From Zygophlyctis sp. KS116 (lineage: Eukaryota; Fungi; Chytridiomycota), in assembly GCA_054661495.1 (NCBI GenBank), contig BAAFSQ010000417.1, positions 1 through 7,079 on the forward strand: DNA of 7,079 nt, written 5' to 3'. Position numbers and translations under genes: made by a program. Shown here piece after piece: positions 1 to 7,079 of this stretch (positions are counted from its first letter, which is position 1; each line of letters opens with the position of its first letter). Below the pieces are notes generated by a model. That model ran no database searches. It was given only the letters and a program-made list of their open reading frames with translations, and had not been told where the DNA came from.

Positions 1-343
1 ATTAAATCACTGCTTCTGATAAATATATTTATTGATCTCAATTATTGTTAATTTTATTGAAGATAAAAGATTTTAAACGTGATTTCCTCAAAATACCTTC
101 CCATAATCATTTACAAAAAGTTAAAATATTTTGGAATAATTCATTAGATCTATATATGGATGGATGTTTGTAATCATATCTATAAAACTCTACACGTTAT
201 TCGTGATTTAGTATTTTTTTTTGTAAAAATCTCATCTCCGGACATGACATGGTTCTGAATACATCAGAATTATCTACCGAATCACATATCTATGTCAAGA
301 AACCCCTCTCTCATTTATCAAAATTAAAATTCAAGTGTCTGTT

Positions 344-365
344 CGTTTAATCTTTAGATTAAATG
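344..365. repeat. Left-terminal hairpin containing the 5' asymmetric terminal inverted repeat
   Basis: CGTTTAATCT-TT-AGATTAAATG: perfect 8-bp stem 346-353/356-363, extendable by a G-T and a C-G pair. Confidence 0.8.
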
Positions 366-502
366 TAATTTTTTGGACATGCAAAATTTTCGTTAAAAAA
401 TATAGGGACGCAATGGGTTTAACTTTCGGACAATTCTCGGACAGATCTGCCTATTCCTAACACATCACCTTGTTTTAATTACAAAGGATTAATTATAATA
501 CG

Positions 503-747
503 GTGGAAGGTCATTAAGCAACAAAAAATAATTTTAGTAAAAGTCTATTTGCTTATATAATCAATCACTCAGACATTTGAAATTTTCAATTTTGGCAGAA
601 ATTTTCAATTTTGGCAGAAATTTTCAATTTTGGCATAAAATTGAGTGGAAGTTCATTAAGCAACAAAAAATAATTTTAGTAAAAGTCTATTTGCTTATAT
701 ATCAATCACTAAGACATTTGAAATTTTTAATTTTGGCAGAAAATTGA
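503..747. repeat. Tandem duplication: 503-644 (142 bp) and 645-747 (103 bp)
   Basis: Both copies read GTGGAAG(G/T)TCATTAAGCAACAAAAAATAATTTTAGTAAAAGTCTATTTGCTTATATA...AAAATTGA. The first copy has two extra 19-bp units and one extra A. Confidence 0.95.
579..635. repeat. 3 x 19-bp perfect tandem repeat GAAATTTTCAATTTTGGCA
   Basis: Identical units at 579-597, 598-616 and 617-635; a single variant copy at 720-738 lies inside the small CDS. Confidence 0.95.
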
Positions 748-1202
748 GGGCTTTCACCCCATACTTTGCAACCAGAAGGACTTTTAATAGAGTAGAGCGA
801 TCCCGGTTGCAAAGCAAACGATTTAGCAGAAGTATTCCAAATTGTAGCAGTAAAAGTAACCTTTCCTAATTTTCCATCAGGTAGTTTTTTAAGAGTACTC
901 AGCAATTCTTTGAAATCCTCACCAGCCGCACATATAGGTGCCAATTTTATTCTTGCAATCGGTTTACCTTGGACTTCATCAAAATCAGCCCATAACAGTA
1001 GACCTTGAATAGTTATATAATCAAACGATTTGTCTAATTTTAAGTGATCTATAAACTCCTCAACTTCTCCAATTACAGCTGCATCTGCTTCTATAGATGA
1101 TATAATTTCTTTGATATTTTTTAAATAGCCGCTTTTCTTTGCTTTTTGTTTCTTAGATTTTTCCAATTTTCCATTCGAATTAATGCATTCTGCTGGTGCC
1201 AT
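702..1202 (-). CDS. Hypothetical 166-aa protein with Lys-rich N-terminus; possible OB-fold ssDNA-binding (RPA/SSB-like) accessory protein
   Basis: Intact ATG-to-TGA ORF of 501 nt in AT-rich DNA, not overlapping another gene. KSKKQKAKK is NLS-like. The strand-like pattern ITIQGLLL / ARIKLA / FTATIWN / LQPGSLYSIK / KVWGESPQFS resembles OB-fold beta1-beta5. The fold call is inference. Confidence 0.65.
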   Translation of the reverse strand: MAPAECINSNGKLEKSKKQKAKKSGYLKNIKEIISSIEADAAVIGEVEEFIDHLKLDKSFDYITIQGLLLWADFDEVQGKPIARIKLAPICAAGEDFKELLSTLKKLPDGKLGKVTFTATIWNTSAKSFALQPGSLYSIKSPSGCKVWGESPQFSAKIKNFKCLSD

Positions 1203-1420
1203 TTTTTTAGATTAGGTTACGCCACGTTTTGAATATAAATGCATAAAACAACCATTTCAAATGATATATACCTACGAAATCTCGACAAACAGCTTTCTTT
1301 AAGTCAAGAAGGGCAAAAAAAAGGTAGTTTTGCAGTAAATCTTAACAGATAGCACTGTATAAGCTTGATTTATTGAATACTAAGTCAAAAAATAATTTAG
1401 ATAAATATTCTTTAAGCATC
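1203..1420. promoter_or_regulatory. Putative bidirectional promoter / 5' UTR region between the divergent genes
   Basis: 218 bp between head-to-head ATGs; contains GCCACGT (1221-1227) and TATAAA (1234-1239). Mostly positional inference. Confidence 0.35.
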
Positions 1421-4400
1421 ATGAGTCTAAAAAGACCAAATATTGATGACGGTTCATTACCATTAGCCAAACGTAAAGCTAAATTGAAACCTACTGGGTT
1501 TTCCTATAAAGATATTTCCGAAGAAGACTGCGAAGATGATGATTATAAGGATTCGGATGATCTCAATCATAAGGACCAATTCTTGGAAATTTATCCTCTG
1601 CACGAAACAAACAAAAAAGATCTAGAAAGAATTAAGCAGCAAATTTCAAAAGGATTGGAAGCAGAAAATTTTCCATTAGTCATTTGTGCAGTGTGTGATG
1701 AAAATGTTAATACTGTTTATCAGTTTTCTCTGTCAAATATTCCATATGATTTGCTTGCGAAAATGAAAATACACCTTGTCTTTCCAGCTAATATTTGCAC
1801 TTCTCTCCTTAAATATTATGACGCCTCTAATGTATGCAAAATATTATCCGGTATCCCACTACAAATCAGGGGACTATCTAATAATGAATTGGCCATATGT
1901 AGTGAATGTTATACTCAGTTATATAAAAAGGTACCTAATTAAATGGTTAATTTTAGGGCCGTATGCCAAAAGCTGCAATTGCAAATGGATTTTTCATAGG
2001 TGAAGCTCCTCATTCCTTACTTGGTTTGTCGCGCACTGAGCTAGCAATGATAAATTTATCTATCCCTCAAGTATATCTTTCTGTTGTTCGTGGCGGCAAA
2101 AATATGGTTCTAAGATCTCATGCTTACTTTTTCAAATCTGAACCAGGTCCTGTAGCTTCTATGCTTCCTCAAAACGTTATTAAATTAGGATCTATAAAAG
2201 TGTCTATTATAGGAGCTTTGACCTCCCCTCAAAAGGCGAAAATTGCCCGTCAATTTGCAGCTAGACCCAACAATGTACGTGATGCTTTGAACTGGCTTAA
2301 ACATTATAACCATTTTTATTCAAAAACTACCTTAGCTATGGATGAGGAAATTGACCATCTTTGTCTATTAATGAATAAGCATACTTTGGAGTATAGTAGT
2401 GAAAACATCTCCGATTTCGATGACGCTATGAACAGACATTCTCAGTCAAATATTAATATTTATCATACACAAACACCGGATGAAATAGAAGAAGATACTA
2501 TACTGGAAAGATGTAACATCATTTCTAATCTGGATAATAATTATTCTGCAAAACATATCCAAATCACACGATCTACAACTTTTCTGTCCGATTATGATCC
2601 AGAATTTTGGAGTCTTAGCTTTGCGGAGCTATTTCCATATGGCCGTGGAGGTATGAATGAAAAAAGACAAATTCCTATATCAGAATCTTTTTTTATTAAA
2701 AAATTACTTCGTATCTCGTCTGGAGCATTCCGTCAACACTTCTCATTTGGTTTGGTGGCATTTGATGTTTTATCGAGGCATAAAGGTGCGAGAACCATCT
2801 ATTACAAAATTAAATCAGATCCTCAAATATCTCTAAGAGCCATAAAAGTAACCAGAGAAGAGCTTTCGGCACATTTGCTTTACGAAAAAGAAAAATTAGA
2901 AGCCTATGCAAAGCACAGGCCAATACCTGTTCCACCAGGCGATGGGAAAAATATTTTTGCTCTTAAAAAAGCGCTTTCATCGGGGCAATCAGCAATGTGG
3001 GGAACTGCAGATGAACGAAAACAGGCACAACGAAAAGCTATCGCCATGACTAAAGAATTTGGACAGCCATCTGTAATGTTTACTATTTGTCCAGAAAGTA
3101 GTTCATCCTATCGTATTGTAGAAATGTCTGAAGGAAGTGCGCGGAAGTTTAACCTGGACGTAAATGTAAAGGATTTTGGAATTAAACACTTGAAATCTCT
3201 TGATCTGCCTGATTAAAAGAAAAGGGATTCTATTGCATCAAATGATCCTGCATCTTGTGCCAGGTAATTAGTTCAGGAAAGAGTTGACATTTTAGATACT
3301 TTGACATCATTATTCAATTAATAATAAGCTCTGTTATCGGCTGGGATACAAAAAAAAACCAGCCAAATTCATTGCCAGGATTATTTGGATATCCGAAAGG
3401 TTATTTGGTATCTCCTGAATCGCAAAACTCTGGAAATCTTCACGCGCACATGTTGATTTGGATCCATGGTTTACCTGCCACAGCATCTCAATATAAATTG
3501 ATATCTGAAAGTGATGATAGATTAGTTCGATATACAAATAATCTTATATCTGTCAACTTGCCCCTCGAGTACGAAAATCGTTGCGTTCTGGTACATTTTC
3601 TTACAGAAAACTAATTTTTAGTGCTCAGTCCCACTGATAGCAAATGATCTGCCTCTGTCAGCATATCACAGAAGTAAACCTGGGCAATTTGAAAGTTCAA
3701 TAGCACAATGTCCCAATTGCGGCAAAAGTTACACATGTAGCGATTTCCACGAACTGGCATTGAATAACAGCATAGATGAAGAAATATTAGACTACATTTC
3801 ATGTTCTTCAATACCTCTATGTAATTTAAAAACTGAATATTTGGCTGGATTATTACTTAAATACCAAGTTCATCACTGGGGACATGTTGCTTCCTGTTTC
3901 AAAAAAGGAAAAAGAGTTTCAAATGGACGATGCTGTAGATTTATCTTTCCAAAAATATTAACTGATCAACGAACTAATGGCAATCAATATGTCAACCCCT
4001 ATAACAAACTAATTGTGTCAACTTTCAAGTGTAACCACGATATCAAGTTCTTATTCGGAGGAGGAAACTCGAATATTTCTTACTATTGTCTTAAGTATGC
4101 CACTAAAGCGCAAAAAGACGTCGAAGATCATATGAATTTTTATATGCAAGCTTTTGATAAAGCAGTCTCTAGAAATGAAGTCAAAGATGACAATGACACG
4201 GAAGATGTCATTAATATAGGTAGGAGGAGACTTTCTTCTATGTTAAAATCACTTACTTCAAAACAAGAAACTTCAGCTCCCTTGGCACAACTTCACTTAC
4301 TGAAAGACTCTCCTTTCTACTGGTCTCATAATTTTATCAATGTTTTTCCATCTACTTATATTAATCAACTATGGAAAACAGACGATGTAGAATTGACTTT

Positions 4401-6777
4401 GACTATAAGTGACAATGGATGTGCAAATTATAATTCCGTGCTGCTGGATTATATATACCGTCCGGAAAAACAGGAAAAACTGAATCTATTTTCCTTTCTA
4501 AAGAGTTATAAATCATATACGTTTACAAAAAACGGAATACTGTTCCTTCCTACACATCCATCTGCTAATAAATTATGCTTGGTTAAACAGAAAATTATAC
4601 CTATCTTGGTTTTTTTGGGGAAACAATTTGATGCAGCGAAAATGGATCTATATTCAAAAAAATTTATCCTGGTCATGTTTGTACCTTTTAGACATATAGA
4701 GTGTTTGGAACCTTGGCTTAAATCCGATTGGATATTTCCAAATGAACAAGCATCCTACCACTATCAGACATGTCTTGATTATCAAGAGTCTAGGCTAAGG
4801 AAAGATTACAAAGATGAAGAAGTCCTGCATTACAATGAACTAGCAATGGGTCAGGATTTTCCTGCTTCTTACGAGACTGATGATTCAAATAACTGTGAAA
4901 ACAGTGAAGATGATAATGATCCAGATAACGATCAAAATACGTTATATGTTGATTCTAGCTCACTGCCACGAGATGTTATACGTGCTGTCACAAGCTCACT
5001 TTATCTAGATCAACAATTTATTATTCCTCATTATAGTGGCTCCGCTGATTCAAAATCGATTCTAAGTCAAGTTCAATTCAAGAATACAATAGTACACTGC
5101 CCAACCATTGTCGAATACATTATGATGAACAAGGATAACCTAATGTATAATCCTTCTGCGGTTACAACATATAATAAATATCCAACTATATTGGCTTCAT
5201 CAAATCAATTTACGTTGAATAAGAGACAGCACCAAATATTTGTTAAATGTGCATTAGCGCTTCTCGCTTCCTGGGCGCAGGACGAACAAATACCAGCAGA
5301 TAAGTTGGATTTATTTAAGGTGTGTAGCTTTGATCAGCTGAATGCACATTTGATCGGACCGGCTGGCTACGGTAAATCGGAAGTCATAAAGGCTCTTGTT
5401 GATTTTGCAAAACAGTGGGAAAGGCCTGATGCAGTTGTGGTTACTGCCTATACTGGGTCTGCTGCACAAAATGCGGGGGGGAATACCATACATTCACTAT
5501 TTGGATGGAGTCCTATGAACATCCACTATAGGGCCACACCTACCCTCAAATCTAAATTCTCTCGACTTAAATTAGTAATTATCGACGAAATTAGTGCGGC
5601 TTCCCAAAGTCTTATTGGATATATGAACCTTATGCTCCAGGATATAAAACAAAAAAAAAATATATTCGGTGGGATACATTATTTATTGGTTGGAGATTGG
5701 CTGCAACTTCCTCCAACAGGAGGAAATACACTTTTTTCAACGCCCAATATATATAACTGTTCCAACAGCACTTTTTGTGCTAGAATGGCAGGAAAAACTG
5801 TATGGGATGCTATTAATTATGTAAGTGAAATCAGCTGCTCTAAATACTAGGTTGTTGAATTGGAGGAAAATATGAGGCATAGAGGATTTCCTATGTTTAT
5901 CGATCTATTAAAAAATTTTAGAAGAGGCAGATACAGCAAAAGTGACATAAAATACTTAAATGAAACATGCCCTGCTGAAAATCTGATCACATACTCAAAA
6001 GAATATTGTCCCTTCATTACAACTTCAAATATTACAAGATGGATTATGAATAAAGCTTGTGTGTATGATTATGCAATGCATAATAAGAGAATTATATATC
6101 AAATAGCAGCAGAGTACAAACAGAAACAGGTTCCTGCTTCATTTTTTACATTGCGAGATTATTCTACTGCCAGAGTATACATGATGCTTGAACTTGTCAT
6201 TGGAATGCCCATAAGTTGTACGAAAAATAATATCGGGGGTGGATTTGTGAATGGAACCCTCGGTATCATACACGGGATACAATGGTCACCAGAAACCGTC
6301 TTTGAAAATTTTATAACTGACACGGGTGTGCATATATACAGAGCTTCACGACTCCCAGAATATGTATTTATGAAGCCTTTTAAGCCAACTGGTCGTGAAT
6401 TCACTGACTTGCCTTCTGGAATAATACCCATTGATGCAACAAAAACTACCGTCAAATTCAATTTGTCACATCGAACCTTTAGGCATTCAATCAATCAAAT
6501 ACCTATCGCACCAGCCTTTTCTATTACCACTGATAAATCACAAGGTTTGACTTTCAAAAAGACGATTATAGACTGTCAAAAAACCGAGCTTCGTTCCCGA
6601 CCCCCTACACAAATTCTATATGTAGCTTTATCTCGTGTAACTGATCCGAACATGATGCGCTTTCTAGAAACCATTTCACTCGAATACCTGAATCAATTCA
6701 CGCCTTCAAAAGTACTACTAGAGGTGGACAAAATTCTTACCGAACGATCAAAGGCATCATCTGAATTCTTTGTGTAG
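1421..6777 (+). CDS. Rep-Hel transposase (HUH endonuclease + Pif1-like helicase), 5 exons: 1421-1930, 1957-3263, 3296-3590, 3622-5820, 5851-6777; ~1745 codons with one internal TAA (3214-3216), so possibly a pseudogene copy
   Basis: Splicing four GT-AG introns restores frame and conserved motifs across each junction: CSECYTQLYKK|GRMPKAAIANG; NDPASCAR|YFDII; NRCVL|CSVP; WDAINY|VVELEENMRH. The first in-frame ATG is at 1421 (MSLKRP...AKRKAK, NLS-like). The ORF-track TTG starts are artefacts of the introns. Confidence 0.9.
1685..2320 (+). other. N-terminal Cys pairs (CAVC 1685-1696, CSEC 1898-1909) followed by a DUF6570-like region (PKAAIANG..GEAP..L..L...E..MI ... VRDALNWLKHYNHFY)
   Basis: Recognised motif pattern typical of the N-terminal part of Helitron2/Helentron-type transposases; not verified by HMM. 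Confidence 0.6.
1931..1956 (+). other. Spliceosomal intron 1 (26 nt, phase 0)
   Basis: AAG|GTACCT...TTAAT.TTTAG|GGC; removal joins the 1373-1942 ORF to the 1963-3216 ORF in frame. Confidence 0.85.
3264..3295 (+). other. Spliceosomal intron 2 (32 nt, phase 2)
   Basis: CAG|GTAATT...TTGAC.ATTTTAG|A; removal yields DPASCARYFDII and joins to the frame carrying the HUH motif. Confidence 0.85.
3591..3621 (+). other. Spliceosomal intron 3 (31 nt, phase 0)
   Basis: CTG|GTACAT...ACTAAT.TTTTAG|TGC; removal creates CVLC and links to the frame of the 3760-5850 ORF. Confidence 0.85.
5356..6636 (+). other. Pif1-family (SF1B) 5'-3' DNA helicase domain
   Basis: Walker A GPAGYGKS (5356-5379); AYTGSAA..GGNTIHS; Walker B IIDEIS (DE 5584-5589); FGG..VGDWLQLPP; LEENMR; GFVNGTLG; PAFSITTDKSQG (6511-6546); YVALSR (6619-6636). 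Confidence 0.95.
5821..5850 (+). other. Spliceosomal intron 4 (30 nt, phase 0)
   Basis: Consensus GTAAGT donor, CTAAA branch-like site, CTAG acceptor; removal deletes the in-frame TAG and gives NY-VVELEENMRH (Pif1 motif IV). Confidence 0.9.
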
Positions 6778-6851
6778 GTCAAATGATATGTTTACTAATA
6801 AACAATTAAAATATAAAATGTAATGGTCATAACCATATATATTTTTACAAG

Positions 6852-6861
6852 AGATTAAACG
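6852..6861 (-). repeat. 3' subterminal asymmetric inverted repeat (AGATTAAACG)
   Basis: Exact reverse complement of 344-353; lies ~40 nt inside the right end, just before the 3' hairpin. Confidence 0.75.
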
Positions 6862-6871
6862 CTCTCCAGGA

Positions 6872-6886
6872 GGACGCTCTGCGGCC
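6872..6886 (+). other. 3' GC-rich hairpin (putative rolling-circle termination signal)
   Basis: GGACGC-TCT-GCGGCC: 6-bp stem with one A/G mismatch, inside an isolated GC-rich island in AT-rich sequence, 11 nt before CTGG. Confidence 0.6.
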
Positions 6887-7079
6887 GACTACCCTGTCTG
6901 GTTTATTTATATTTATTGATTGGAACTAATATTACCCAGTTTTAAAGCAAACCATGCTAAATGGATTTAAGTTCACAAAAATAATTTTTCTTATGGTTTA
7001 ACCTCTCTCTACTTTTAAAGTATTCTCTTTGGAGCCAAACTGCATAGTCAAATTAATTTTATTGGATCCTCTAATTTTT

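Follow-up and report, generated by a model that had tools for sequence, protein, structure and literature searches.

Helitron-like elements of the HLE2 group are marked by DUF6570, a domain of the Rep-helicase (RepHel) transposase that has been reported only in this clade (PMC11417382). In the HELIANO survey, insertion at T|T targets was an HLE2 trait, HLE2 elements showed an enrichment of RPA genes upstream of RepHel and genes with an Ssb-like_OB domain occurred almost only in HLE2 (PMC11417382). Among the described fungal elements, FoHeli1 and FoHeli2 of Fusarium oxysporum are non-canonical and Helitron2-like, measure about 5–6 kb and encode a RepHel without endonuclease (PMC5148889), and FoHeli3, which has an upstream divergent open reading frame (ORF) of unknown function (PMC5148889), was renamed 'HLE2-reverse' (PMC11417382). 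Here we describe an element on contig BAAFSQ010000417.1 (C417) of the chytrid fungus Zygophlyctis sp. KS116 (assembly GCA_054661495.1). The contig was analyzed at its full length of 7,079 nt, referred to below as the window; it is AT-rich (27–39% G+C) and comes from a fragmented assembly of 12.7 Mb in 1,175 contigs. Positions 344–6901 (plus strand, 6,558 bp), lying between T343 and T6902 inside an older dispersed repeat, very probably represent one copy of an autonomous-type HLE2 element of the Helitron2 variant that lacks an endonuclease. This copy carries two divergent genes, for a Rep-helicase and a probable OB-fold partner, is inserted between two Ts without a target-site duplication and is probably dead or crippled.

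We assign the element to HLE2 because it carries the DUF6570 marker, sits at a T|T site without target duplication and has an inverted-repeat arm 40 nt from its 3′ end, and the same features bear out the proposal of a first-pass annotation that it is Helitron2/HLE2-like and lacks an endonuclease at the C-terminus. Like FoHeli1 and FoHeli2, it encodes a RepHel without endonuclease and shows no target duplication (PMC5148889). FoHeli1 and FoHeli2 have a 12-bp asymmetric terminal inverted repeat, with the 5′ arm within a terminal hairpin and the 3′ arm 38–51 bp from the end (PMC5148889), compared with a 10-bp repeat and a distance of 40 nt here. The termini differ (TCAG...ATTTT in FoHeli1 and FoHeli2, CGTTTAATCT...CTGG here), as does the target, which in FoHeli1 and FoHeli2 is preferably after TNAT and here is T|T. 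FoHeli1 and FoHeli2 also lack an accessory gene and occur in many near-identical copies, whereas the element here is present once, has a partner gene and contains four micro-introns. FoHeli3 is larger, at 9–11 kb, and has a stem-loop at its 5′ end without a 3′ hairpin (PMC5148889); its extra ORF resembles the partner gene described here in being upstream and divergent.

HLE2 elements that carry an RPA or Ssb-like_OB gene combine a DUF6570 RepHel, short inverted repeats, T|T insertion and an upstream gene for a single-stranded DNA (ssDNA)-binding protein (PMC11417382), as the element in the window probably does. The partner differs from the RPA and SSB genes of those elements in matching no Pfam RPA or SSB model. 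Although the first-pass annotation suggested that the two-gene layout might be undescribed in this host lineage, it is not new: HLE2 elements with an upstream RPA or Ssb-like OB gene have been reported (PMC11417382), as has the divergent upstream ORF of FoHeli3 (PMC5148889). Helentrons, such as the autonomous partners of DINE-1 (PMC4067079), belong to the same wider clade by the domain marker and share subterminal inverted repeats and T|T targets, but carry a C-terminal apurinic/apyrimidinic (AP) endonuclease that is missing from the window protein.

The insertion point can be seen directly by comparison with other copies of the flanking repeat. Window positions 21–343 and 6902 to about 7015 match contig C84 at 66–71% identity, and this copy and a minus-strand copy on contig C756 are both uninterrupted at T343/T6902, reading ...TTCAAGTCT..ATCTGTT and then TTATTT.. 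or CTGATTG.. across the insertion point, with no target duplication seen. At 60–70% identity, the ends are resolved to about 1–2 nt, with one T ambiguous at either junction; because of this ambiguity, the 5′ end can also be read as TC. The earlier ends, at 342 and 6901, were right to within 2 nt and are now placed at 343|344 and 6901|6902. The repeat itself, an unclassified AT-rich sequence, is present in six or more copies that are 60–90% identical (among them C84:15339–15839; C756:935–1344, minus strand; C756:460–604; C934:691–880; and C824:966–1050).

At the left terminus (344–365, plus strand), CGTTTAATCT at 344–353 forms one arm of the terminal inverted repeat and also contributes half of a palindrome with a 9-bp stem at 345–365. 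The other arm, AGATTAAACG at 6852–6861, is subterminal, ending 40 nt before the 3′ end, so that the repeat is asymmetric, as first proposed; a repeat search of the window returned 344–353 and 6852–6861 as a perfect 10-nt inverted pair. The intervening 3′ tail (6862–6901) is GC-rich, contains a small hairpin at 6872–6886 and terminates in CTGG.

The Rep-helicase gene extends on the plus strand from an ATG at 1421 to a stop codon at 6775–6777 and consists of five exons. In the first-pass annotation, five apparently separate plus-strand ORFs (1373–1942, 1963–3216, 3372–3614, 3760–5850 and 5860–6777) had been joined into a single RepHel with all HUH/Y2 and Pif1 motifs. The assignment of these ORFs to a single gene was confirmed, and they carry the domains and motifs in order. 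All searches with this gene were run exon by exon, and in Pfam they returned each of the three families for which the protein was to be searched: DUF6570, Helitron_like_N and PIF1. Exon 1 (1421–1930, 170 aa) contains two CxxC pairs, at 1685–1696 and 1898–1909. Exon 2 (1957–3263) encodes DUF6570 (PF20209; 6e-21; 75.7 bits, cut-off 24.3), which is also present in the metagenomic relative L034 described below, followed by the first part of Helitron_like_N and Rep motif 1, MFTICP (3076–3093). Exon 3 (3296–3590) supplies the end of Helitron_like_N and the HUH motif, HAH (3441–3449). The two Helitron_like_N pieces are colinear, covering profile positions 4–121 in exon 2 (23.9 bits) and 150–191 in exon 3 (17.4 bits), and either piece alone falls below the cut-off of 28.9 bits.

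The two-tyrosine motif, YYCLKYATK (4081–4107), lies in exon 4 (3622–5820, 733 aa), together with Pif1 motifs I–III; here we located the Walker A motif GPAGYGKS (5356–5379), motif Ia TGSAA (5452–5466), the DE motif IIDEIS (5578–5595) and GDWLQLPP (5692–5715). Exon 5 (5851–6777, 308 aa and the stop codon) holds motifs IV–VI, including KSQG (6535–6546) and motif VI, YVALSR (6619–6636). The helicase matches PIF1 in Pfam (2e-14), with a weak UvrD_C-type end, and its two halves match solved Pif1 helicases in the PDB at 3e-13 and 7e-7. The stop codon follows motif VI by 46 codons, and the element ends 124 nt further on. Exon-wise Pfam searches gave no match to Exo_endo_phos or any other endonuclease, in agreement with the earlier description of a protein that ends about 46 codons after motif VI without an endonuclease.

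Support for the gene structure comes from metagenomic relatives. A word search identified P0001, a protein of 729 aa that is 58% identical to exon 4 and is encoded on L034, a 4.4-kb ENA metagenome contig; by tblastn, the exons of the window gene are 54–65% identical to L034. A more distant relative, L035, is 34–48% identical, exon by exon. The gene contains four GT..AG introns of 26–32 nt, at codon positions that exactly match those of introns in L034: intron 1 (1931–1956, 26 nt; 24 nt in L034), intron 2 (3264–3295, 32 nt; 30 nt in L034), intron 3 (3591–3621, 31 nt; 28 nt in L034 and absent from L035) and intron 4 (5821–5850, 30 nt; 26 nt in L034), the last of which is in frame and holds a TAG. 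Since the L034 introns occupy the same codon positions despite having diverged from those of the window in both sequence and length, these four introns are well supported. Such very short GT..AG introns, like the standard stop codons, are consistent with a eukaryote that has a small genome. Word-indexed protein searches returned just three relatives for exon 4, a number that does not imply rarity since the length window of these searches omits full-length RepHel proteins, and a scan of JGI metagenome contigs with an exon-2 alignment found nothing.

A fifth splice, which the first-pass annotation also required, was not confirmed. The ORF at 1963–3216 stops at a TAA (3214–3216) in exon 2, downstream of Rep motif 1 and upstream of the HUH motif, and the same reading frame resumes beyond it. 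The only in-frame GT..AG candidates that would remove this TAA are 3160–3219 (60 nt) and 3166–3219 (54 nt). In L034, the corresponding stretch is in frame, free of stops and conserved (VNVKDFGIKHLKSLDLPD followed by the stop in the window, IKHRNFGIDYLRSFNLPDS in L034), and nucleotide matches between the two over this stretch number 8, 15 and 9 of 20 at the first, second and third codon positions, a coding pattern. Because the L034 stretch is coding and stop-free and the matches follow codon position, the TAA is likely to be a recent nonsense change. Two observations speak for splicing: the candidate fifth intron contains a branch-site-like CTGAT at the position seen in the true introns, and 14 residues are missing from L035 at the TAA stretch. 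In view of these, an in-frame splice tolerated over the TAA is a less likely but still credible reading. The gene comprises 1,745 codons if the stretch is kept, the TAA among them, and 1,725 if the 60 nt are removed. To call the element complete, as had been done at first, was therefore an overstatement, since the proposed splice probably masks a true in-frame stop and the termini occur only once in the assembly. The element is structurally whole and probably inactivated, the present copy being probably dead or crippled by the in-frame TAA.

The partner gene (702–1202, minus strand) is a single exon encoding 166 aa, and it is the one divergent gene that had been predicted inside the element. 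Its start codon is separated from that of the Rep-helicase gene by a 218-nt spacer (1203–1420), presumed to be a bidirectional promoter. The partner has no match in Pfam even at E = 10, a profile of it gave chance-level matches only among PDB sequences, a word-indexed protein search with the partner alone found no relatives and a scan of JGI metagenome contigs with a partner alignment found nothing. An exhaustive search of 1.8 billion representatives identified P0004 (53% identical), P0005 (49%) and P0009 (30%), all of which are small metagenomic proteins. Four long matches from the representative search (P0006–8 and P0010) were discarded as repeat-rich proteins of the HYR/fn3 type.

P0004 and L034 derive from a single sample, and the divergence of P0004 from the window partner is about equal to that of the transposase. 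On the 1.35-kb contig of P0004, an upstream, divergent stretch, 'RKPLRFSYKDMSSDD', resembles 'KLKPTGFSYKDISEED' in the N-terminal exon 1 of the window gene, which is suggestive of a two-gene layout conserved on that contig. An in-frame TAA truncates P0005 (L052:30–530; ENA ERZ27280247 k141_1555218), with similarity resuming beyond it, and this locus may be either another decayed copy or one that carries an 18-nt intron. On contig L051 (1150–1351; ENA ERZ27280238 k141_4425618), downstream of the partner homologue in the metagenomic relative, a 69-nt unit occurs twice before the contig ends and contains a small hairpin (ATAGC-CGAAA-GCTAT); this unit may be the left terminus of that relative.

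Structural comparisons point to an OB fold. A language-model feature search with the partner returned OB folds of the POT1/RPA type, at 0.90–0.92. A single-sequence structure prediction was uninformative, with a predicted local distance difference test (pLDDT) of 35. An AlphaFold (AF2) model built from 4 sequences reached a mean pLDDT of 57, with values of 65–82 in the C-terminal 100 residues. The Foldseek matches of this model were all OB-fold ssDNA binders (E of 2e-4 to 1e-2), among them archaeal SSB/RPA, the OB-A domain of Teb1, human SSB1 and PriB, and comparison of the model with OB-fold ssDNA binders gave VIA Z scores of 7–8 over about 85–93 residues. On the basis of this model, the partner is reasonably likely to be an OB-fold ssDNA-binding protein. 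Since it matches no RPA or SSB model in Pfam and has three relatives among 1.8 billion representatives, it would represent either a highly diverged or an independent family of OB-fold proteins.

The end of the partner gene lies in a repeat block near the 5′ end of the element (494–748), made up of a 142-bp tandem duplication and a 19-nt unit. The last 14 codons of the gene and the sequence downstream are duplicated in tandem with a period of 142 nt, positions 503–604 and 645–745 being 95% identical, and the 19-nt unit, GAAATTTTCAATTTTGGCA, is repeated 3.2 times at 579–639. A tRNA gene search found none.

Pieces of both genes are found elsewhere in the assembly. Transposase fragments occur on C502 (286 nt, 94% identical), C210 (79%), C780 and C289 (both 81–93% identical to the window), and C185 holds a 246-nt piece of the partner gene that is 87% identical and contains four stops. 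The fragments on C289 (1436–2952) and C780 (268–2037) belong to a common repeat of about 1.5 kb, in which the two copies are 86–93% identical; it carries window 4302–4436 fused to 5674–5781/5914, a chimeric scrap of the transposase gene, and is otherwise unrelated to the window. Neither terminal motifs nor weak similarity to the window ends were found in the C289/C780 repeat, C502 or C210. These scattered remnants of both genes show that several copies of the family once existed.

The assembly also contains, on C167 (2655–7592; L054), a second HLE2 transposase of an unrelated family, encoded without introns in a single ORF of 1,645 aa that matches DUF6570 (1.7e-25), Helitron_like_N (9.5e-22) and PIF1 (1.3e-21). 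It is 23–32% identical to the window protein over the aligned stretches, and a profile search of its neighborhood found no homologue of the partner gene.

Several observations weigh against our interpretation of 344–6901 as an HLE2 element with these ends. The 10-nt inverted repeat is of modest significance (p about 0.01), an exact inverted match of this length being reached in 26 of 2000 shuffles and in 1 of 210 interior windows. Of the hairpins said to bracket the element, the 5′ palindrome at 345–365 exists, though as a DNA fold its 9-bp stem is weak (z of -1.3), and neither it nor the 3′ GC hairpin at 6872–6886 (-4.6 kcal/mol, z of about 0) outperforms shuffled sequences. The ends were placed with paralogous sites that are 60–70% identical, rather than with true empty sites or family alignments, and the assignment to HLE2 comes from domain marker, termini and target, rather than from phylogeny. 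No further copy with these termini emerged when the 12.7-Mb assembly was searched at the DNA level with the entire window, its two flanks, the 5′ and 3′ regions and the 20-nt left terminus, and matches to the terminus pattern with 3 mismatches were no commoner in the whole assembly than those of a control; the search for copies and empty sites that had been proposed thus yielded no copy with shared termini, although it did yield the uninterrupted paralogous sites on C84 and C756. The OB fold of the partner depends on the four-sequence model, and its VIA Z scores are in a range that the tool calls common or middling. Finally, contig C28 contains a version of the locus that lacks 78–7015 and not 344–6901. 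In the last 160 nt of this contig (C28:62683–62842, minus strand; L008/L016), window 1–77 (100% identical) is bluntly joined to 7016–7079 (94%), and C28 continues past the junction into an Elf1-like zinc-finger gene (MAKKKSATRKP...CLEC). C28 and C417 therefore differ by presence or absence of the whole segment. We also note that the exact 77-nt overlap with C28 resembles the k-mer overlap of an assembly graph.

Could the mobile unit instead be the larger segment, 78–7015, with 78–343 and 6902–7015 as its true termini, the features at 344 and 6901 internal, C84 a short non-autonomous derivative and C28 an empty site? The C28 junction lacks a duplication and reads A|T, as junctions made by canonical Helitrons do, and C84 holds 21–343 followed by about 6917–7015. 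However, in C84 the repeat continues colinearly through 77/78, with 57 nt upstream of 78 matching at 75%, and the second C756 copy, which starts near 67, also spans this point, so that the C28 junction lies inside the repeat; for this reason we rejected C28 as a clean empty site. The mutual match of C84 and C756 extends about 85 nt past the equivalent of 7015, neither 78 nor 7015 has an inverted repeat or hairpin and at least five diverged copies of the repeat are without RepHel sequence. C28 is better explained as a deletion or alternative haplotype, in which part of the repeat was probably lost together with the element, and we regard the larger unit as unlikely. A domesticated, single-copy host gene would account for the presence of one full-length copy with unique termini in the assembly and for the introns conserved in L034. 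It would not account for a segment that breaks a dispersed repeat precisely between two Ts, is absent from the C28 version of the locus and has the terminal and subterminal inverted repeat expected of HLE2, nor for the in-frame stop in the Rep-helicase or the decayed fragments of both genes on five other contigs, and we consider domestication very improbable. Equally slight is the chance that this is a canonical Helitron (HLE1), a group whose members have a 5′-TC, a 3′-CTRR and a hairpin 10–12 nt from the end, insert at A|T and lack inverted repeats. The ends here can be read as 5′-TC (343–344) and 3′-CTGG (6898–6901, fitting CTRR), and the small GC hairpin at 6872–6886 is 15 nt from the end, but the target is T|T, a terminal and subterminal inverted repeat is present and the protein carries DUF6570, which is reported only in HLE2 (PMC11417382). 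Moreover, the Rep exon fails to detect Helraiser, the HLE1 transposase in the PDB, which the helicase part alone detects weakly (2.5e-5), ranking it below cellular Pif1.

If 344–6901 is an HLE2 element, how would it have moved? By analogy with studied Helitrons, we infer that Rep would make a nick at the left end, in the plus strand, and remain bound to that strand through a tyrosine, as the helicase unwinds it 5′ to 3′. The subterminal arm, with its match to the left terminus, would serve together with the GC-rich tail in recognition of the right end, and the second tyrosine would then close a single-stranded circle. The OB-fold partner may coat this circle, which would be inserted at a T|T site. 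A more speculative possibility, which we put forward tentatively, is that the partner represents a previously unrecognized OB-fold family that co-evolved as an obligatory cofactor of an intron-bearing HLE2 lineage, that the palindromic left terminus either folds on itself as a hairpin or pairs with the right subterminal arm, switching between the two states and so defining the transposed strand, and that the C28 variant without 78–7015 reflects recent loss or mobilization of a composite unit. The points behind a cofactor are that partner and transposase are equally diverged in the metagenomic relative and that the divergent layout is alike.

These results leave the current understanding of how Helitrons work unchanged. 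They do provide an HLE2/Helitron2 element with clear boundaries from a chytrid-like fungus of an early-branching lineage; a limited literature search, which is not proof of absence, found no Helitron-like elements specifically described for such fungi. Three points may be of some use to transposon specialists. Where an element has no second copy, a dispersed repeat can be used as a set of paralogous empty sites. Four micro-introns are kept within a transposase gene between relatives that are only about 60% identical. Finally, an accessory protein that is invisible to Pfam and is probably an OB-fold ssDNA binder would extend the known HLE2 layout of a RepHel with an upstream RPA or SSB gene.

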